NCBI GenBank assembly: GCA_047495785.1
Contig: JBLDXI010000066.1
Coordinates: 248,001-312,000 of the forward strand
Direction: 5' to 3'
DNA from: Lepidodermella squamata
Lineage: Eukaryota; Animalia; Gastrotricha
Length of the DNA: 64,000 bases
The first letter of the stretch is position 1, and every line of letters starts with the position of its first letter. The notes beneath the pieces are model-generated. The model saw only the letters and a program-made list of their open reading frames with translations. It searched no databases and had not been told where the DNA came from. The position numbers and the translations under genes are program-made. Of the stretch, positions 29,987 to 40,503 are shown one piece after another.

Positions 29987-32386
29987 CTAGCTATAGCTCG
30001 GTTTGATGGTACTTTGATCTATGGACCCGCGGCCATGTGGCACCAATTTGACCTTTCCGTATCCTAATATTGAGAGTATTTCCTCAATCGTACGCAGCTG
30101 CAAACAGAAGGTCATGGAAATCGACGTTCCGAGCGTGAATGCTGATAGCGTCCCAAATAGAACATTCGGCGAAAGATCCAACACTGCGTAAGAAAACGCG
30201 CAGAGAAGTAGAAAAGAAGACGTAATGTAGAGAGCTACCGAAGTATTCCTAATTTCCTCATTATTTCTGCAATCGGCAATCAGATCAGCCGAAAAAGCTG
30301 ATGAACTGACTCGCGGTCGAAAACCATAGGACCCAGCCCGAGTTCGAAACTGAGTGTTGAAATTTCGTCCACCTGTCGATACCAACCGGCCACGTTTTCG
30401 ATTCGAGCTAATCGCCATACTTAGAGCAGCGACTAGAATAAAGCCTTGAAATCCAAGAAGAACTTTAGGACTAACATCTTCACTGTTGAAAGAGCACAGA
30501 AAAACATGTTCTGTCCATAATGTATCTATTTCTGCTTCGTAGACACTTTTTGTAGAAATATACGCATTCGGCTTAGATTCTCCTGTGTACCAAATTAGGA
30601 CTAACATAACATCAAAAAGAACTGCAGCAGCTATACCCTTGAAATATATTTTCGTTTTCAATCCCTCTCCACTATGGCGTAACATCGATAGTTTGGCACC
30701 AATCGCGGCTGTTGTTAGACCAAATCCGATAACGACGAGAGGTCCTACAGCCGAGCAAAACAGACCAAGACTAGGTAGATTGGTACTATCGATTGGGTGA
30801 AAGAGCGCGGCCGATGCCAGTAAGGTGGAGCCGAGACAAATGAGAAAATCGAATGCGCTATTCGTTTTATGGATATGGCCAACCATTTGTAGCAACCATT
30901 TCAATGTGACAGTTAGTACTATTACTGCTATTACACAGATGACAGTGACTCTTTTAACTACAATCTCTCTATAGGCTGAGAGTGGCTCGGTTCTGAATGT
31001 ACCCCTTTGCCATCGAAGTGGAGAGATTTTCTCGAAATACTTGACAGGATCTGAAATGCTGCGATTTCTCGCGATCAAAACCGTATTTCGAGCTCCGCGA
31101 TACAGCTGCTCAGCAGTGATAGGTGGGTTTATCGATTCGTCCTCCCCGGGCAGAAACGCAGCTTTTCCGAACAGACCAGTTGCTACGACATTCATAGACT
31201 TATTGCGGATAAGTTCGGTCAAGTCTACTCTTCTCTTCTCATCACGAATTAGGTCTTTCAAAGTCTCATTTCTCATGTTCAGCTCGAGCTCAGTGTTATG
31301 GAGGATTCTAGCCCCGATAATTACGTCATCAAAACACATGATTCGCCAGGAAAAAGCGGGATGCATCTCATAATTCGGGATTTTCTTAGCTAGGTAATCA
31401 TCCAATTGCTTGAGGGATATGCCTATCTCAGATTTGAAGCTCTTAGACTGTGAGTTCGCGAGATAATCAGGCCCGATATACAGCGAGTATTCAGCGAATT
31501 CCTGGATCATCTTCTGACTGCAGCCATTAGGGAGAATCCCATTAAGGAGGTTGATCCATGAGTTGAAGATCCATACGACATTTGGCCCCCATAATCCTTG
31601 TTTATAGGCTTCACAGGCCAAAGCTGGGCAGAAGTTCACGTAGCAGTTAGAGTAGATAACTCTAACATCTGCTGATTTCAGCCTAGCCAAAGACTCAGCC
31701 ATACCAGTTTCGTCGATGTAGAACTCCTCGGCGGCAACTTTCTTCCCAGCTCCGAGAATTGCCTTGGCGAAGTAGATGGCATCGTCATACGTGGTTTGAA
31801 CAGCATCAGCCAGGTAACCCATGCGGTTCCAGCCGAGGTAGATCATCATTTTAGCTCGAAATTTCTCGACCTCGACGAAGCTGGGGGCGAATCGGTAGAA
31901 ATTCGGGTACAACTTTCGATTCGTAAATTGAGGCTCCGTGCATCCGACCAAAACATTGATGAATCCGTAGTGCTGCGGCAATCTGGCTGCTGTTTTGCAG
32001 GTAGGTGAGCAAAGACCACCCAGCATTAGGGGTGGAACATAAGCCTCTTCATTGCAAACTCCCCGAAGTGGCAATGTTAGATTGCCGTAAACTCGCGAGC
32101 TTTGAACGACAGGTTCGAGATTTTCGTAGAATTTCAGAGCAGTTTCCTGAGCTGCTGTAGCTAGGCATTGATCATCGCCCATATCGATTTGCAGGTTGTA
32201 GTCGGGTAAGATATCCGAATTCGAATTGATCGACTCCAGAGCCATGCTAACGGCCTCGGTGCACATCGGACCCATAGGATTGACGGGGCCACCAATCGGA
32301 GCACTCATCGGTACTTTCAAGGTGAAAGGCTTCGATGCGAAAGATAACACTGGAAAAGCTAACAATACAGCTGATATTTGGAACAT
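29987..32386 (-). CDS. Intronless class C GPCR, GABA-B-receptor-like (Venus flytrap domain plus 7TM), about 799 aa
   Basis: ATG at 32386 starts signal peptide MFQISAVLLAFPVLSFA. VFT motifs AVSMALESINSNSDILPDYNL..DDQC, GGLCSPTC, FTNRKLYPNFYRFAPS, LGWNRMG, CEAYKQGLWGPNVVWI. No cysteine-rich domain. TM3 C...GFGL....AK and TM4 D..L..W are GABA-B-like. Confidence 0.85.
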   Translation of the reverse strand: MFQISAVLLAFPVLSFASKPFTLKVPMSAPIGGPVNPMGPMCTEAVSMALESINSNSDILPDYNLQIDMGDDQCLATAAQETALKFYENLEPVVQSSRVYGNLTLPLRGVCNEEAYVPPLMLGGLCSPTCKTAARLPQHYGFINVLVGCTEPQFTNRKLYPNFYRFAPSFVEVEKFRAKMMIYLGWNRMGYLADAVQTTYDDAIYFAKAILGAGKKVAAEEFYIDETGMAESLARLKSADVRVIYSNCYVNFCPALACEAYKQGLWGPNVVWIFNSWINLLNGILPNGCSQKMIQEFAEYSLYIGPDYLANSQSKSFKSEIGISLKQLDDYLAKKIPNYEMHPAFSWRIMCFDDVIIGARILHNTELELNMRNETLKDLIRDEKRRVDLTELIRNKSMNVVATGLFGKAAFLPGEDESINPPITAEQLYRGARNTVLIARNRSISDPVKYFEKISPLRWQRGTFRTEPLSAYREIVVKRVTVICVIAVIVLTVTLKWLLQMVGHIHKTNSAFDFLICLGSTLLASAALFHPIDSTNLPSLGLFCSAVGPLVVIGFGLTTAAIGAKLSMLRHSGEGLKTKIYFKGIAAAVLFDVMLVLIWYTGESKPNAYISTKSVYEAEIDTLWTEHVFLCSFNSEDVSPKVLLGFQGFILVAALSMAISSNRKRGRLVSTGGRNFNTQFRTRAGSYGFRPRVSSSAFSADLIADCRNNEEIRNTSVALYITSSFLLLCAFSYAVLDLSPNVLFGTLSAFTLGTSISMTFCLQLRTIEEILSILGYGKVKLVPHGRGSIDQSTIKPSYS

Positions 32387-32850
32387 ATTCAAGATTGTCT
32401 TGAATTCTGAAGAATTAAGGGTTTATAAAGGACGATTCCGGACGTACTGTTTTTAAATTCGATATCATGCTGCGAGTCTAATGAGCCCATTGCACATCTA
32501 AAATAATGTCTCCATAATGTCTTGTTTTCGAAAAGTCACGTTTGCTGTTCGCACCAAAAACACGTGCGTCTGGGATTGTTCCAATGATGTGAGCATTAGG
32601 CTCACTGACGGCGAACAAATCAAGAACTTTGAGTACGTACCAGCAAGTAAACAAGTGGGTTGATTAGCCTTAAAAACAGACGTCATATTGGAGGTACTAT
32701 CGGCTACAACTGTATAATTAGATCTTATTTTCTTGAAGAGAGACGAACCCAATCTATCCTAACTCGTAGCAGCTCAAATAACACGCGAGCTAATTTACAA
32801 TCAAAAAAGTTCTGGAATAGGACAGTTTTTATTTTTTTTATAAGAAATGT

Positions 32851-33941
32851 CTAGTTATTAAGGAGGAGGTCTCGTCCAGGTCCATTTCGCCCGCACGGAT
32901 CTCTGACCAGTCGAAATTCATCGGGAGTCGGAAACATGAACGTCAACCTTTTCGGATAGACTTTTTTAGTATATTTCCATAATTATAGGAATGCAAGTCA
33001 ACCAAACCTTTCTGCTATCACGTTGGCCCATTGAGGATAATCTCTTGCCACGTCTAGCATGTTGTCGTTTGATACGATTATTCCGCCCTTATCAAACGCG
33101 TATTCCACAGTGAACAGGTCGTCGTACGGTCGCTTTATGCTTCCATCTGGAACTCTTTTGACTGGAATTTTGATAAGCAGCCCTTCATTGCTTAGCTCAT
33201 GTAGAATATGTTGACCAGCAATGGGTTTACGATGGCGGCGTGATGATGGGTCGCAATCCAGTTTTTCCTCGCTGATTACAGCTTTCACTTGGGTATGACC
33301 CTGACTTTGGAAATAGCGAATAGCTAGTTCCAAACCCCGGCAGGAATAGACTCTGTGATCCCCATGATACATACAGACATTATTAGCGTCGATGATAATC
33401 AATCTGATGTTTACAATAAGTTTCAAGACTCAAAATCAGGGGTAGGAAACCTGTTATTTGATGGTGAGGTTGGTTTCGTCAAGAGCTTTGCAGCAAGCTC
33501 ATCCAAGGCTATGCAGGCCTTATTCACGCGATCTGAACCATATCCTTTGATCGCGAAAACTGGTTCTGCTGTTGCATTAATTGGCCGGTCTATCGTTACG
33601 CCCCATTTGCTTTCGATCACAGCTAACTCCGAATTGTTCGAAGGATCAATAAGAGGACCAACAGCGGATTGAGGAACATTGAAGTTCACGGAATGAAATG
33701 GTTGCCTTCGCTCAAGGGTCTTACATTCTTCGTCCGATGAGAAGAATTGCTCCAATAGTTGAATAGCAACTCCCACTTGCATTTCGAGCCCTTCTACTCG
33801 CAGGACGATTTTTTCGGGCTCGAGGATTCGCTTGATCGAAGCGCCAGCTTGGCGTGAAATATTTGCGATGCGTTTGTTATGGTGGCCTATGTACAAATTA
33901 TTAGGCACCAGCACATCTGCTTGCACTATATTAGCAGTCAT
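32851..33941 (-). CDS. KH-like x2 plus Zc3h12a/Regnase-type NYN (PIN) ribonuclease (KHNYN/N4BP1-like), about 327 aa alone, or the 3' part of a fusion with the upstream GTPase
   Basis: Exons 33941 (or 33954)-33451, 33403-33008, 32947-32851; the last acceptor is weak but restores the frame. NYN motifs IIIDANNVCMYHG, AIRYFQSQGH, YDDLF, GGIIVSNDNMLD, DPCGRNGP, with the catalytic Asp positions present. Two KH-like units (VPNNLYIGHHNKRIANISRQAGASI and VPQSAVGPLIDPSNNSELAVIESKWGVTI) have degenerate GxxG loops. Confidence 0.8.
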
Positions 33942-34021
33942 AATAGAAAATAATCTATCTAAAAATAAACAAAAAAGTTGTCACTCGAACAGACTATAAT
34001 TTGATTCGCAAGCATCTACGT

Positions 34022-35984
34022 TCACTTGTCATGGGATCTTTGATAAATTCTAGTTCCACTCAGTCTAGGAGGATGTGTTGGCCGATCACTGGTACGTTTC
34101 AGGCGGGTAGTCGAGGAGTTTTCTGAGGTTCGAGAACCTAAAGCCGCTTGCAAGAATCGTTTCACCTCCCCACTCGATTTTGTCCAACTTCTACTGCAAG
34201 ACTCTAGCTCATCTTCGTCATCTAAAGGTAAATTGTTTTCCTTAGCAGCCAACAATCGGATCGCTTCGTTGTCGAAGCAGAAAATGTTGTCGATTGAGAG
34301 GGTAATGTCGCAGCGATCTGAACTCAACTGACTTCGAAGGGTTGCCAAGCTATCGCCGGGTTTGTATCCCGTGCTTCGGCAGTGAGTGAAGCCAAAGTAA
34401 ATCGAAGCTTTTCCTCGGTCATTGGCGATTCTTTTCACCTGGTCGATGCAGCGTGTGAAAAGAGGTGTTGCTCGAGCCTCGTTTGTTTTTAGAAGAAATA
34501 GAACAGTCAGATGCCTACGTTCATGCGATATTGCGTCCAATATCGAGTCGAAAGTTTCCTTCCGGAAACCAATGCTAGAAGGATCGCCCAAACCTGGGGT
34601 ATCAATGAAGTCAGTCTCGCCTAAAGAACCATCAATGCGATATTTCTGAATTGTTCGCGTAATTCCATCATCGTTGCACCCTCCTACTCGGATGTCAATC
34701 GTCTTCGAGAAATCGGAAGTGACGATCTCGTGTTTGCTAGGAGCATGCCATAAATTTTCGCCAGACTGCAGAGCCTCATCGAAAGACTTGAATCGCTCGT
34801 AGTTAGCTACTGCGTTAATGAAAGTTGTCTTGCCAACACCTCCCTCGCCAATAATCAAAATAACTGGGCCCTGCGTTGACTTTGAATCTGGATGGTGAGG
34901 CTTTCTTTCGAGACGGGTCGTTTGATGTCCTTTGTGCTCGCCAGCTGTGGGATTCTGAGAATCGTCCGATCTCTTCTGAGAATCGGCCGAACTACAAGGC
35001 TCGTCAAGTTTCTTTTTAGAAGGATCCTCCGTTTTTATGCGGCTGGTTTCAGAATTGACTTTGAGGTTTTCAGGTTTGACAGATGTCGGCTGCTTGATCG
35101 AAAACACGCTTTTCAATTCGATCCCTTTAACATTCGGGGAATCCTCCAATTTCTTCCCAGGTTGAACTAACGTACAACGAGGCTCTTCAACTAATCTCTC
35201 TTTCGAAAGATCCTCAATTTTTCTTTGATGACTGCTTCCTGAGTTGACTTCGTTTCCAAGTTGGACAGGTTTTGGCTGCTTGCTCGAAACCACGGTTTTC
35301 AATTCTATTTCTTCAAGACCAATAGCTGCCATGCTGAAGTTGTCGAAACTGTCGCATTTCGCTCCGAAGAAATCTTCAGGCGGCGAGTTGATGTCTAAAA
35401 ATCAGAATTGTTAAGCGAGTTTCATTCAATGATTCGTATCCTTACAGAAAACAAACATTTCCAACTTATCGATGCCACTTATTAATTCTTTAAACTTGGA
35501 TGGTTTACTACCAGAACCCTCATCGCCTCCGTCCGAGAAAATAATTATCATTTTTCGGTAACAATCGAGTCTGGATAACACATGCAGTTAATAAGAATCA
35601 CAAAGGGACTAGGACTCACTTGATCATAGCTGATGCAGCAAATTTCACAGCATCTCGCATCAGCCTTGGGATGACGCCCCTTTTCGGTCTCATCGCTTCG
35701 AAACCAGCAGCATGCCTCGACAGAACTAGCGCATCAGGTTTCGAGAGCGATGATACTTGCACCAGGGATTGGCGCGAATCTAGTGTTTGTCCAAAAACGG
35801 TGAAGCTGATGAAATCATTTGAACTTAAAACGACATGAATAATGAAAAAAAATATTCAATTATTCACTAGCATTTACCTCAGTTGAGCAGCGATTCGATC
35901 AATAATTTGCTTCACGCCTGCGTCGAGACAAGCTATGTGGCTGCACAAGATGCCATATGCCTTTGATTCGGGTTTATCGGCCAT
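34022..35984 (-). CDS. VWA-like domain, linker and septin/AIG1-like P-loop GTPase (about 602 aa alone, about 933 aa if spliced to KH-NYN)
   Basis: Exons 35984-35878, 35823-35620, 35570-35446, 35394-34022 (or donor after 34026); in frame. VWA-like elements LSSNDFISFTVFG, RLMRDAV, MIIIFSDGGDEGS, with no DxSxS. GTPase G1 GEGGVGKT, G3 DTPG, G4-like FTHCR, plus FCFDNEAIR and SWTKS. Confidence 0.75.
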
Positions 35985-36251
35985 TTGAACGTTGCTAAGC
36001 TCGAATACAAGTCAAGCTAATAAATGCTAAAAAGGAATTATTGCAAATTCAGAAATTCTCAGGCTATTTTTCACTCTTAATCCTAAAATTACAACAATTT
36101 CGTAGCTCAGCTACATTTATCAATGGAATTATTTCCATGTCATCAGCAACTGATAGACTAACGCAATCACAACTATATCAATCACCTACGCATATGGCAC
36201 TAGCCCTTAAACTGTTATCTAATCTTATCCAAAGTCACTCGGATTCCATAA

Positions 36252-38811
36252 TTAAGCCCTCCGCAGTCGACTGCCGCTTATCATTGCCACGTACACTTCC
36301 GCATTTTGCTGGGTTGATTTCTTCTCAGCTGCTTGTTTACTCTTCTGAAGAGTCGTAATCTTCTGGCCAACGATAGGATCCCGCTTCAGTTCTTCAATCA
36401 AAGCGTTAACATCCTCCAGAGTCATTAAGGCACTCGAAGCAGCTTGTGACGAAGCTTTATCGATAGTTTTGTTGGCCTCACGATACTGCTCCAAGGTTTT
36501 GTTTAGGGCAGCCAGTTTGCTATCAGGCTTGCCAAGCGCAACATCTCGTTTTTCCGCCTCGATTAAATAGGCGATGTAATTCTCCAACGCGTCGTTGTAC
36601 GGCATAATAGCATGTGATCGGACGAAGGCTGCTAGCTTAGCACAGGCTTCAGTTAGTCTTCGGTGGCAAAGCTGGTACTTGGCGAGGCTTTTCTCGATCT
36701 CAGCCAATACGTCTTGGATATTCCCAGAGCGCAGTTTCTCAGCGGCTAGCTTGTCCTCGACGTATCTCTGTTCGAGGATGTAGCAGATGTGCATATGATC
36801 GCGATACGAGCACGAACAAACTTTGCATTGGGCATTTAGGGGGTCGTTCATTGCCGAGCAGCGGCGAAGTCCTTCTTGGGGGTAGCAGCCAGTTTTTATG
36901 CCCTAAATAATTAGAAAATAAATTGATAATTTTGAGCTCAAATAAAGGTTCAGACTGAAGTGCAATGAAAATTTCGAATAAAATTAGTTTAATTAATTCA
37001 ATTAATAAATTCTAACCTGCAAGTAACAATGGTCATGACAAGTTGTCTTGTAAATCGGCTCCAAGTTTCCTTCCTGATAGCTAACACATTTCGCAGCCCG
37101 GCAAACCGTTTTCGGGTAGCTTATCTCTGTTTTCTTAAGCTCGATACGCATGATTTTTGGAATTGAACCAGCGATGCCTCCCGCACTGTGATTCATCAAC
37201 TTTTGCCTAGTTTCCTCCATCAAGTTGATGTTAAGTTGGACATTCTGGGCAACGTCCGCCAGTGGTTCCGTTAAATCGACAATCAAGTGCCGAGCCATGT
37301 TGACGGTCAGAGTTTCCTTGGTTTCGTGTCCAGAATTGAGCTCAAGTAGATGTTTAATCATCCGAGCCATTTCCTTCACAGATTTGTCCCAACTCGAGTA
37401 GAATCCCCGAATCTCCTCCGAATCTGTGATTGGAACTCCGCACTCTTTTGTAGCCAAGTAACGAACGGCTTCATTATCGAAAAAGAAAACATTATTCTCG
37501 CTTAAGGAAACTTGGGCGTCCTCCAATTCAACGTTCAAAAGCTGGACAGAAGCTCCTGGTTTGTAATGGGTCTCGCGGCAATACGTGAAACAAAAGCAAA
37601 TGTTCCTCCTAGCATTCTTATGAAGTTGGGTCAGAAGTTCGCGAATGCAGTAGCAAAACTCCGGGGTTCGGCGCTTTTCGTTGGGTTTAGACAAAATTAT
37701 GATACCATGAATTTCCGGGTACCGTTTCAAATGCTGCATTGTAGCTTCAAGATTCGCCTTATCCTGCTCGAAGCCACGGGTATCGCCGATTCCTGGCGTG
37801 TCGATCAACTTGATGCGAACTTTGTTGGATATAGGAATGGTATAAGTCACAGGTTGCTGAGTGACTGAATCTCCAGCTTTTCCGTACTGTTCATTCTTCA
37901 AAGTGGTTGAATTCGCGTTGGAAGTTCTATGGTAGCCAACTCTTATTTTGGTAGATTGCATTCTGGCATCGGTAATGTCGAACTCGAGTGGGATAACCCA
38001 TTGCTTTTCGCCGTTCAAAGCCCTGTCCAGCGACTCAAATTTCAAATAGTTTACGAAACCATTGACAAAAGTTGACTTTCCAACGCCAGTCCGGCCGAGG
38101 AGAAGGAGAACTATTTCCTTCCTGGAGAAATAAGTTGGAAATTAGAAAAAACCTAATCTAGCTGACTGTAAATTTTAGCAAAAGCGGCAAGTAATAGACT
38201 CAATTAGGCTTACTCTTGGGCCATCGATAGCGAATGAAGTTGTTGCGAAAGTTCGTCAACTTCCGTCGGGCGCTGTTGGTTTCGGGGCGAGGCTGCCGGA
38301 CGTTGTTGGTTTCGGGGGGAGGGCGTCGGACGTTGTTGGTTCAGGCCATTTCTCGGCCCTGAAAATAACGGGGGTGGTAAGTTGGATGCTCCAGCAGAAC
38401 TCGACCTGTCTAGCAAAGGCGGGGGTAATTGGGTTCTGGGTCTTGGGCCCTTCTGCTCCCAAGGGGCGACGTGCATAATTTTGTCTTTCAGTCTGTAGTT
38501 GTTGAATTTCTGAATCGCTCGCTCAGCTGCGGCCGCGAAACGGAACATTACCGTGCCGTAGCTTCAAATGATAGAAAATATGGCTGAACTTGAAATCAAT
38601 TAGAAGCTACTTACGCGAATCCCTTGTCGTAGAAGTAGGTGATGTTGGTGCTTTCCACAGGGCCGCATTGTGCGAACAACGCTTTGAGCTCATCTTGGCT
38701 GACATTCGCATCGATGTTTTTGACAAAAACTGTGGGGGTTTGGCGATTTTGATGCTGTTGACCATCTGCGGATTCAGCTGCTCGATGACTGGCAGGTCGA
38801 GTATTCTGCAT
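36252..38811 (-). CDS. RRM, Pro-rich linker, septin/AIG1-like GTPase, Cys/His-rich region and coiled coil (4 exons, about 766 aa)
   Basis: Exons 38811-38615, 38561-38214, 38121-37017, 36902-36252; in frame. RNP2 VFVKNI and RNP1 KGFAYGTVMF (split by an intron). G1 GRTGVGKST, G3 DTPGIGD, FTYCR, FFFDNEAVRYLA, SWDKS. Metal-binding-like region C..C...CHDHCYL...C...CKVCSCSYRDHMH. Confidence 0.85.
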
Positions 38812-40503
38812 TACTACACTCTAAAATGACCTCCGAAAATAAAATTTATCAAGCCGTTATGACGCAATACCGCAAAGCCTTTATAACAGCAAGTTAATGA
38901 TTAAAATTGAGTAAAAACGTAATATGAATAAGGCGAAAAAATGACCCCACTACTCTTGAAGATGAATAAAAAAGATGTAAATATCGCAAGGTTCTTAACG
39001 TGAGTGAAATTATCGCGCAGCTGTTTTTTATAACCTTTTTATCTATGGCCTTTTCAAGCCATTTTTAGGTATGAATGGAGGTCAGAACAAAAATGCACCA
39101 CGCTAGAACGATAAGAATGATAAGCCGTCGTGCTCATTTTTTCTATGCTGATAAACCACCAAGCATTTTTTGCGGTCTACTTGAATATCAGGCAGTTGTG
39201 GCGATTAAAATTTATGAGGAATATTGATCTCGCTTGGGTATCCCTTGAGGAGGACGACATGTTCGATCGAGTGTTTTGTATGCGCGATCGATAGTAAGAG
39301 ATGGAACACGCTAAACTGGATCTTGACTACTGTCGATAACTTTCGTTCTTTGCTTCAACAATTGGCGTGGTTTGTCTTTACAAAAAAGGCTCACAGAATT
39401 TTAAAAAGAGAGGAAGCGCGTGTTAATTCGAGGTACCTAATTATAACAACGTGCAAACTTTGGCCATTTTCAATTCAAACCTCAAAAAAGCTTTTTCAGG
39501 ATTTCTCTTATTGCGAAAATGTGTTATATGTGCAGACAATTATTTTGGGTAAGATTAACTCGATAGACGTGATTAAAATTGATACAGTTTAATATCAAAT
39601 GATGCCAAGCCTCCGTAATACAAGTGTATAATGTCGAATTTGAGAAAACGTATGTTGCTCGGTTGGCAAGCTATCCTTCACCTGACAGTCTCGATGGATG
39701 TATCTTTTTGTCCTTGGGAGCAAACTTATTCACACCTGTTGTGTGTTGCGCAACAATGAGCGTGCATCAGCTACGGCGAAGCTTTAAAAATGAGAGAACC
39801 CAAGTCGCTAGCCACATCTCATATGGACTCGACACTGGCAACTTTTTCCACTACACAGGAATAGGAATAGAAATTTATTGATCGAAAAAATCTGCTTTTT
39901 TTACTACACGTAATAGTAGAAATAGAAATGCTAATTTCCGGCATCTTTTTGCATTACAAAGCAAAAAGTGACGGAGCAAGTGAAGTTTCCATCACCTGGC
40001 GCTGTCAATAGCTCTTCAAGTTAAGAGAAGCAATTTGAAGCAAATCGAAGGGACATAATTGAATTGATAAAAATCACCAATTTTATGAAAAAGCAGAATC
40101 TTTAGCTGCGGGAGATCGTCATGTTCGCCTGCTTTCATGGAAATTTGAAATATCTGTATAAACCTCAACCCTGGATTCCAGGTTCCAAATTCACGCTTTT
40201 TCACTCGAGGTTGTAAATCATGGGCATTAATCTCATTCAAAGTAAATAATGTCGATAAATTCAAACAAGTTTCCACAAGTCCGCGGTTTATAACTGGCCC
40301 ATTTCGCCCAAAACCGAGCGGTCATGTAATGGGAACTTCGAAGCCGCCCCGTCCTATAGTACGTCTCATGAATAAAAGTGATAAATTTCCATTTTTCATA
40401 AGGCAAGTTTACTTTATTTGGCACTCATCGGAATAAATAAATAGAATTTTGAGGCCTTCACAGGGGAAAATAAACTTCATGATTCTTCAAATATTTTCAG
40501 TTT

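Follow-up and report, generated by a model that had tools for sequence, protein, structure and literature searches.

GIMAP/AIG1-type GTPases have been linked to immunity in plants and vertebrates, and AIG1-clade GTPases such as GIMAP and Toc34-Toc33 are activated by nucleotide-dependent dimerization, with Toc34 and GIMAP proteins pairing via their G faces when GTP is bound. KHNYN and N4BP1 are endoribonucleases of vertebrate antiviral and inflammatory control that combine a di-KH module with a NYN domain. To our knowledge, no member of the DUF8206 branch of AIG1-like GTPases has an experimentally established function; fungi, rotifers, arthropods, and protists commonly carry the family, which joins an AIG1-like G domain to DUF8206. 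In the nematode Halicephalobus mephisto, an AIG1-like family is reported to have expanded, and relatives of it have been noted in Rhizophagus, arthropods, and Giardia (PMC6872716). NTPase-centered conflict systems combine a septin/GIMAP-clade GTPase switch with swappable effectors, as does the locus described here, and in animal immune-type architectures the RNA-binding modules KH and RRM and the RNase module NYN are recurrent partners (PMC7159879, PMC8195603). These conflict-system papers by Kaur, Burroughs, Iyer, and Aravind concern prokaryotic systems and TRADD-N or Death-domain proteins (PMC7159879, PMC8195603).

Here, we analyzed a locus of the gastrotrich Lepidodermella squamata, at positions 32851-38811 of the window (the whole stretch of DNA analyzed, 64,000 nucleotides), where two sister GTPase genes, A and B, are followed head-to-tail by a KH-KH-NYN frame, all on the minus strand. 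The best overall explanation, to which we give a probability of roughly 45%, is that the sister GTPase pair and the KH-KH-NYN RNase form a GTP-controlled, RNA-directed module.

Layout of the locus

The features, in the direction of reading, are the following.

38615..38811, minus strand: gene A exon 1, with the ATG at 38811, RNP2 and the first half of the RRM; donor GT at 38614-38613
38214..38561, minus strand: gene A exon 2, the remaining half of the RRM, leading into a disordered linker rich in Pro and Gln
37017..38121, minus strand: gene A exon 3, the G domain with P-loop, switch I Thr, and DTPGIGD, a helical hairpin, and the first half of a Cys/His module
36252..36902, minus strand: gene A exon 4, the second half of the Cys/His module and a coiled coil; stop TAA at 36254-36252
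35985..36251, minus strand: A-B spacer, 267 nt from the gene A stop to the gene B ATG
35984-35878, 35823-35620, and 35570-35446, minus strand: gene B exons 1-3, the N-terminal region; open, phase-matched GT-AG exons
34022..35394, minus strand: gene B exon 4, two linker repeats of ~45 aa ahead of a divergent G domain, ending in TGA at 34024-34022
33955..34025, minus strand: intron or intercistronic spacer, 71 nt between gene B and the KH exon
33451..33954, minus strand: KH-KH exon, with an in-frame ATG at 33941
33008..33403, minus strand: NYN exon (Zc3h12a-type PIN endoribonuclease), all catalytic residues present
32851..32947, minus strand: last exon, a conserved post-NYN tail; stop TAG at 32853-32851

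Homology searches were run exon by exon. Local introns span 47-114 nt. A canonical AATAAA occurs solely after the last stop, beginning 21 nt in as counted from that stop; the A-B spacer has none, and the 71-nt stretch holds no poly(A) signal except AATCAA. The ATG of the KH-KH-NYN frame lies only 80 nt past the gene B stop. A TTTTAG acceptor stands 9, 42, and 17 nt upstream of the ATGs at 38811, 35984, and 33941, respectively, and the second and third ATGs also have an AG closer by, at 10 and 13 nt. In the A-B spacer, TTTTAG and other AG acceptors lie within the 10-42 nt that precede the gene B ATG.

Two other accounts of this arrangement were rejected. A and B do not form one read-through gene, as gene A ends where its homologues end and the acceptors read before the gene B ATG all give a stop or the wrong phase. 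A mobile element was discarded given that flanking inverted or direct repeats are absent and the genes are single-copy.

Two sister GTPases of an AIG1-like family

An earlier note on this DNA had placed two paralogous GTPase domains here, and the placement holds: they align over 260 residues with 34% identity (E 3e-42), every GTPase motif listed in that note occurs in both translations, and a 61-row tree groups the two G domains as sisters (SH-aLRT 97). We rejected an ancient, conserved pair of one A-type and one B-type gene, as A and B are mutual sisters and tandem pairs elsewhere are independent duplications. On the same tree, tandem G-G proteins originated independently in several taxa, and such repeated origin fits G domains acting in pairs.

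By sequence, both GTPases belong to the widespread eukaryotic family with an AIG1-like G domain and DUF8206 (PF26633). The gene A G domain returned more than 360 family matches (best E 1.3e-79, 41% identity, 100% coverage), nearly all annotated MMR_HSR1/AIG1 plus PF26633; P0001 and P0012 are among those annotated with PF26633. The gene B G domain matched residues 6-250 of family member P0001 (37% identity, E 3e-37), and a HMMER search with it recovered 1215 representatives at E<=1e-3, 855 of them at E<=1e-10. The resemblance to the family covers the G domain (~40% identity, E 1e-79), tandem G-domain duplication and, in gene A, the helical hairpin, Cys/His pattern, and coiled coil. The GTPases themselves are therefore not of an unknown kind, their family having already been noticed (PMC6872716), and the expanded family of Halicephalobus mephisto is probably the same one. 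This 121-Mb genome has three G-family members in total, two in tandem and one distant.

The predicted fold is nearest to Toc34/GIMAP, not septin. In searches with the AF2 model of the gene A G domain (pLDDT 84.6), the top 15 Foldseek matches were GIMAP or Toc34 throughout; structural Z scores reached 17.9 for Toc34 (rmsd 3.0 Å, 206 residues) and 15.2 for GIMAP7/GIMAP2, with Toc33 within this span, whereas other GTPases (EF-Tu, mitofusin, septin) scored lower, at 13-14 (Septin3, 13.1). From the initial description as "septin/AIG1-like," we accordingly retain AIG1-like and drop septin; the Pfam Septin profile gave 17-18 bits against a cut-off of 26.2. The Pfam AIG1 profile (PF04548) also remained below its gathering score (26.9 bits for gene A exon 3 against 27; 14.1 for gene B), and the tandem relative P0123 reaches 52 bits against it. 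GIMAP and Toc34-Toc33 share with A and B the P-loop, switch I Thr, and DTPG motifs and have C-terminal helices packed on the G domain, as predicted here, but sequence identity is merely 14-17% and the flanking domains differ; a PDB sequence search with the G exon gave no match at E<=1. The invariant columns G9, G12-K15, T17, T87, and D107-G110 are intact in A and B. An NKxD-like G4 motif was not seen in the A/B family alignment, the family conserving K-P-N..R and F-T-N-x-R in its place.

Gene A bears out the N-terminal RRM proposed for it: its exon 1 reaches 30.2 bits with RRM_1, above the cut-off of 20.7, and covers profile positions 1-32, and RNP1 and the remainder of the domain lie in exon 2, past a phase-matched intron. 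In the gene model the RRM exons splice to the GTPase through two GT-AG junctions with matching phases. None of the relatives compared has an N-terminal RRM, and the RRM exons might instead be a separate small gene, unspliced to the G-domain exon. We consider such an artifact very improbable, given the matched GT-AG junctions, the 115 open codons of exon 2, and a G-domain exon whose start, straight after an AG, falls on the first beta strand ahead of the P-loop and which carries no ATG before that loop (the open frame around it is 379 aa, against 368 aa for the exon, with no upstream in-frame ATG). The exon 2 linker contains a 30-nt tandem repeat (direct repeat D2, 38267-38326). When this genome's NYN paralogues were considered as the origin of the RRM, no similarity to it was found.

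The Cys/His region and coiled coil recognized at the gene A C-terminus are real and correspond by homology to DUF8206 in other members of the family. The A3/A4 intron interrupts the Cys/His module, and P0001 aligns unbroken over this junction (residues 365|366), exon 4 matching its residues 366-567 directly after the end of exon 3 at 365. Exon 4 was matched by 172 of 257 fetched relatives, and all consensus Cys/His positions are kept.

Gene B departs from the family in that the DUF8206 part, with the entire Cys/His and coiled-coil region, has been dropped and a KH-NYN RNase adjoins or is fused to it. The P-loop, switch I Thr, DTPG, and the conserved motifs that follow are still present in its G domain. 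Lost are T11, S85, G116, D120, N123, L163, and L166, seven residues with 100% conservation across 35 aligned relatives, of which three lie right after switch II; R115, conserved in 94%, is changed as well. Judged by these losses and by its branch length (1.35 versus 0.48 for A on the 61-row tree), the gene B G domain is a fast-evolving, degenerate copy. The "VWA-like" N-terminus suggested for gene B found no support from any tool in exon-by-exon tests: exons 1-3 had no match in Pfam (E<=1), NCBIfam, PADLOC, or the ESM Atlas, where exon 2 had no meaningful neighbor (top score 0.76), and no DxSxS of a VWA MIDAS motif is visible in exon 1. Across all exons of the locus, PADLOC and NCBIfam returned P-loop noise only. 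Gene B was not present in the public protein collection (best match 39% identity), and an exact-product look-up of its open reading frame gave no record in another contig.

The KH-KH-NYN frame and its relation to gene B

The NYN domain was described at the outset as having intact catalytic aspartates, and indeed the Asp/Asn/Asp-Asp/Ser-Asn-Asp..Asp positions are all kept; as far as these residues tell, it is catalytically complete. The exon scores 98.6 bits against RNase_Zc3h12a (PF11977) and matches the structures of ZC3H12C/A at E 1e-22 and of KHNYN at E 5e-17. Regnase-1/ZC3H12A-D are thus its closest sequences, with the same catalytic Asp/Asn/Ser set, though their CCCH zinc finger after NYN is missing here (the last exon has one Cys), as is their N-terminal UBA-like domain. 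This genome has four NYN genes; the other three stand alone, their flanks holding no GTPase over the ~1.5 kb examined, and one of these genes has the order KH-KH-RRM-NYN. In a paralogue on C54, a single open reading frame reads through the NYN/last-exon junction. A metagenome scan with the NYN exon yielded 140 pattern matches, 0 of which were confirmed.

Of the two KH domains reported, the first stands (KH_1 24.9 bits, cut-off 21.5) and the second is tentative, its beta-alpha-alpha-beta-beta-alpha topology (residues 88-159) appearing only in a low-confidence AF2 single-sequence model (pLDDT 48). The ESM Atlas neighbors of the KH exon are exclusively KH clusters; the exon gave no match, even at E<=10, in the PDB, solved di-KH chains included, and showed no similarity to this genome's NYN paralogues. 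The frame resembles KHNYN/N4BP1 in its KH-KH-NYN order, with the KH modules at its start. It differs in length (~330 aa here, 680-900 aa there), in the missing CUE-like/CUBAN ubiquitin/NEDD8-binding tail, as it stops 31 residues past the NYN exon, and in the GTPase, which is adjoining or fused only here. Both KH modules lack the GxxG loop, as does KH1 of KHNYN. Since the di-KH domain of KHNYN does not bind RNA (PMC11997328), the KH part here may not handle RNA either.

The earlier note had KH-KH-NYN following the second GTPase. The adjacency is real; membership in the gene B chain is ambiguous, owing to a stop that overlaps a donor and to the frame having its own ATG. The overlap is between the gene B TGA (34024-34022) and a GT at 34025-34024 that may serve as donor, and of the AGs in the 71-nt stretch the first gives an AAA-TAG stop and the second keeps the frame. 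We lean toward the KH-KH-NYN frame being a separate third cistron with its own ATG; that it is the C-terminus of gene B falls somewhat short of even odds. The single chain that the latter would produce (N-terminal domain-G domain-KH-KH-NYN, cis-spliced from GT 34025 to AG 33956-33955), in which a degenerate GTPase would gate its own RNase, is more tentative again. It is consistent with a reading frame preserved over the junction, with a length of 71 nt inside the local intron range and a strong pyrimidine tract, and with the lack of a recognizable poly(A) signal between the gene B stop and the acceptor; a stop right after a phase-2 GTRA donor is, moreover, automatic, and the same is found at gene A exons 1 and 2. 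Weighing against it, the in-frame fusion requires the less favored AG, four bases downstream of the one that gives a stop, an in-frame ATG lies five codons into the KH exon, all three ATGs of the locus follow a TTTTAG acceptor at 9-42 nt, and no such fusion occurs in any of the 257 relatives.

A candidate GTP-controlled RNase module

As far as sequence goes, the claimed link of these GTPases to RNA-handling modules holds, with an RRM fused to A and a KH-NYN frame adjoining B. The coupling is known from one genome only: none of the 257 fetched relatives matches the RRM, KH, or NYN exons, and 78 long relatives scanned against Pfam at strict cut-offs contained no RRM, KH, NYN, or VWA, so that the combination, initially called undescribed, remains so among the relatives tested. 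Nor did we find any text in the literature describing a GIMAP-clade GTPase joined to an RRM or NYN. In relatives, effector-type domains occupy a variable N-terminal slot, with MACPF_SNTX in at least 31 of the 78 and FYVE plus kinase, ankyrin, or galectin in single cases; where they carry MACPF_SNTX+DUF7656, kinase+FYVE, ankyrin, galectin, or nothing, gene A carries its RRM.

With only three G-family and four NYN genes in the genome, chance would rarely place a NYN gene 80 nt downstream from a G gene (~1e-3, assuming ~20,000 genes). This improbability of direct adjacency within 121 Mb speaks against A, B, and KH-NYN being independent genes packed together by chance or structure, the NYN being an ordinary N4BP1-like RNase, and so does the RRM of gene A, which places an RNA link within one gene, the neighbor aside. 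Such a chance neighborhood would account for a KH exon with its own ATG 14 nt past the acceptor, for the coupling being in no relative and for the stand-alone state of the other NYN genes, and it agrees with the start of the di-KH at residues 6-12 in KHNYN/N4BP1 (PMC11997328); on balance we regard it as unlikely. Under that reading the GTPases would act elsewhere, e.g., in membrane or cell-death control like their MACPF-bearing relatives.

Returning to the GTP-controlled module, we propose the following. (i) Genes A, B, and KH-NYN would be made from one transcription unit. (ii) When GTP is bound, A's canonical G domain and its degenerate counterpart in B would pair through their G faces. (iii) Pairing would join the RRM and scaffold of A to the NYN nuclease and tie RNA cleavage to nucleotide state. 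Co-transcription, the A-B heterodimer, RNase gating, and a defense role are all inferred, and the strongest form of the proposal, in which a GTP-dependent A-B heterodimer recruits or switches on NYN as a GTP-gated, RNA-directed animal immune effector, is doubtful. The likeliest role would be RNA-directed defense or conflict against viruses or retroelements, as relatives carry pore-forming or other effectors in the same variable position, and the sensor/effector RNA-defense reading of the earlier note is plausible as a candidate; the alternative would be regulated decay of host mRNA. A real module that controls the host's own mRNAs like Regnase-1 and N4BP1, not defense, would suit a genome with only two tandem copies and a distant one and no lineage-specific expansion, and Regnase-1 and N4BP1 degrade cellular transcripts too (PMC11997328). 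We nonetheless think this housekeeping role improbable, as gene B evolves fast and the family is patchy, repeatedly duplicated, and often MACPF-fused, which fits conflict genes better.

Should the genes be no more than neighbors, what is left is a single little-studied animal with an RRM fused to a GTPase. The position of the GTPases beside an RRM and a complete Regnase/KHNYN-type nuclease suggests an assayable output, nucleotide-state-controlled RNA cleavage. If true, the heterodimer/RNase reading would provide the first testable function for the family, on a scaffold that fungi couple to MACPF pore-formers, and it may point to a family rule in which the G domain and DUF8206 act as a switch with lineage-specific modules, MACPF pores in fungi and an RNase here.

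Gene models and the probable RRM-GTPase fusion

Gene A and gene B, two paralogous minus-strand GTPase genes, and the KH-KH-NYN reading frame downstream of gene B (the KH-NYN frame) lie on contig 66 of an assembly that comprises 151 contigs and 121 Mb, in a eukaryotic window of ~42% G+C with GT-AG introns of 47-114 nt. The ends of our models agree exactly with the coordinates of the earlier note. Searches and folding used single exons throughout.

Exon models of the locus (window coordinates)
38811-38615, 38561-38214, 38121-37017, 36902-36252, minus strand: gene A, exons A1-A4, stop TAA at 36254-36252
35984-35878, 35823-35620, 35570-35446, 35394-34026, minus strand: gene B, exons B1-B4, in-frame stop at 34024-34022
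33954-33451 (KH-KH), 33403-33008 (NYN), 32947-32851, minus strand: KH-NYN frame, ATG 33941, stop TAG 32853-32851

The N-terminal RRM claimed for gene A was recovered in exon A1 (30.2 bits against the RRM_1 threshold of 20.7). That the RRM exons are joined to the GTPase, a splice whose failure had been named as grounds for abandoning the proposal, is supported by exon A3, which carries the G domain and opens at the strand preceding the P-loop, immediately after an AG, in a frame without its own ATG, and by the two junctions upstream of it, both phase-matched. On these sequence features, the fusion is very likely real. P0001, a fetched relative from the family combining an AIG1-like G domain with DUF8206 (PF26633), aligns with exon A3 up to residue 365 and with exon A4 from residue 366, a continuity that confirms the A3/A4 splice and a complete family core in gene A. 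Short in-frame tandem repeats lie within the disordered linkers of both genes: in gene A the unit is 30 nt long and encodes a Pro/Gln-rich motif (window 38267-38326), and gene B has two units of ~45 residues (window 34953-35152).

The KH-NYN frame and its relation to gene B

The NYN domain had been described as having intact catalytic aspartates, and its sequence agrees (PF11977, 98.6 bits), with Asp, Asn, Asp-Asp and Ser-Asn-Asp..Asp all retained at the catalytic positions; E values for the exon against structures of ZC3H12C, ZC3H12A, and KHNYN run from 1e-22 to 5e-17. As for the proposed KH pair, the first domain passes Pfam, and the second is suggested by a beta-alpha-alpha-beta-beta-alpha order in a poor single-sequence model and by Atlas neighbours that are exclusively KH. 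Given that the KH loops lack GxxG and that the di-KH domain of KHNYN does not bind RNA (PMC11997328), the pair may be a protein-binding module instead of an RNA reader.

Gene B and the KH-NYN frame are 80 nt apart under either reading, and we put the probability that the frame is a separate cistron, not part of gene B, at roughly three in five. The rival reading, in which the frame is spliced onto gene B at 34026/33954 to give a single chain, gains from a junction that is in frame, a 71-nt stretch resembling local introns, a gap without visible poly(A) signal, and a stop that arises automatically after a phase-2 GTRA donor. Against it, the first AG (33960-33959) yields AAA-TAG, a stop, so that only the second AG permits fusion, and the KH exon has its own in-frame ATG five codons in. 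The separate cistron is further favoured by KHNYN and N4BP1, whose di-KH domain begins at residues 6-12 (PMC11997328), and by the other NYN genes of this genome, all three of which stand alone. T-rich TTTTAG acceptors on the minus strand (window 38820-38827, 36027-36034, and 33959-33966) lie 9, 42, and 17 nt upstream of the ATGs at 38811, 35984, and 33941, a pattern that also counts for a separate cistron, and are possible spliced-leader acceptors; a closer AG lies 10 nt ahead of ATG 35984 and 13 nt ahead of ATG 33941. The claimed coupling of GTPase to KH-KH-NYN holds insofar as the frames adjoin, and the single-chain fusion is uncertain. Since the sole canonical AATAAA follows the last stop, the two genes and the KH-NYN frame would fit one transcription unit.

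Additional NYN genes of the assembly
G000:C54:3259090-3262464: NYN gene L006
G000:C13:3747361-3752585: NYN genes L007 and L008

One of these is KH-KH-acidic linker-RRM-NYN and two are in tandem, with an unassigned N-terminal region; no GTPase was found within the ~1.5 kb flank examined. Downstream of our locus, ~460 nt past the stop of the NYN frame, begins a minus-strand single ORF (window 29987-32392, 801 aa) in which an ANF-receptor ligand-binding domain scores 93.5 bits and the C-terminal half is hydrophobic; it resembles a class C receptor and probably has no connection with the GTPase/NYN locus.

The GTPase family and its duplications

The two G domains are paralogous as first proposed (260 residues aligned, 34% identity, E 3e-42), all motifs quoted for them occur in both, and they are sisters in a tree of 61 G domains (SH-aLRT 97), with a long branch for B (1.35 versus 0.48 for A). 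Gene B retains the P-loop, the switch I Thr, DTPGxGD and later conserved residues, and deviates at T11, S85, G116, D120, N123, L163, and L166, all invariant in 35 aligned relatives, as well as at R115 (94% conserved). A search with exon A3 returned over 360 proteins (lowest E 1.3e-79, ~40% identity), nearly all annotated MMR_HSR1/AIG1 plus PF26633, from Glomeromycota, rotifers, beetles, a springtail, a tardigrade, a coral, a sea urchin, and Giardia. Gene B matches P0001 in the G domain only (residues 6-250), and its G domain drew 1215 representatives at E<=1e-3 in a full HMMER search. The closest of these reached only 39% identity, which places gene B itself outside the public collection.

The AlphaFold model of exon A3 (pLDDT 84.6) is nearest to Toc34 (Z 17.9, rmsd 3.0 A, 206 residues), also near Toc33, GIMAP7, and GIMAP2 (Z 15.2), with EF-Tu, mitofusin, and septin lower (Z 13-14). 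The predicted fold class is therefore that of the AIG1/GIMAP/Toc clade, not septin. The family is probably that of the AIG1-like GTPases reported in the nematode Halicephalobus mephisto, which are often multi-domain, have kin in fungi, arthropods, and Giardia, and were proposed to derive by transfer from Rhizophagus (PMC6872716). None of the papers searched uses the term DUF8206; the family is known, yet uncharacterised. The VWA-like domain claimed for the N-terminal region of gene B found no library match, and no MIDAS motif is visible; as this region was searched as three short exons, it may still be a degenerate VWA fold.

The rest of the genome holds only one more, distant family member.

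Further G-family member
G000:C9:4959813-4963601: L004 on contig 9, 400-aa ORF containing a P-loop and DTPGYGD, then a Cys-rich ORF with coiled coil

Nine relatives carry two G domains per chain, including P0123-P0127, P0129, P0141, and P0145 from the beetle Aethina tumida, the millipede Chamberlinius hualienensis, and metagenome contigs. Within each chain both domains are mutually nearest kin, indicating repeated, independent tandem duplications.

Partner domains and a proposed mechanism

In a Pfam scan of 78 long relatives at strict cut-offs, at least 31 carried a stonustoxin-type MACPF domain, most of those with DUF7656 too, and single proteins carried FYVE plus kinase, ankyrin, or galectin in variable position; RRM, KH, NYN, and VWA were found in none of the 78. 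The recurrent order is MACPF, DUF7656, Cys-rich stretch, G domain, DUF8206, seen in P0148, P0150, P0146, P0138, P0147, P0153, and in 25 of 52 proteins from one alignment, one such protein coming from the lichen fungus Pyrenula. This architecture, for which a literature search found no paper, points to a putative GTPase-controlled pore-former. The RRM, KH, NYN, and B1-B3 exons of our locus matched none of 257 fetched relatives, a result that can be trusted for NYN and carries less weight for RRM and KH. Among about 260 relatives, none showed the family coupled to RRM and KH-NYN; the features described from the sequence are real, with the exception of the VWA call and of the joining of gene B to KH-NYN, which is uncertain.

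Nucleotide-dependent dimerisation across the G face is the established means by which Toc34 and GIMAP proteins become active. By analogy, we propose that canonical A and degenerate B would pair GTP-dependently, with A contributing the RRM and a Cys/His and coiled-coil scaffold, and B or the cistron downstream of it the NYN nuclease, such that nucleotide state would then control RNA cleavage. This mechanism is a testable hypothesis. A role in conflict or defence would fit the family's MACPF fusions, its patchy spread, and its repeated duplication, and would agree with what has been proposed for GTPase-centred conflict systems (PMC8195603).
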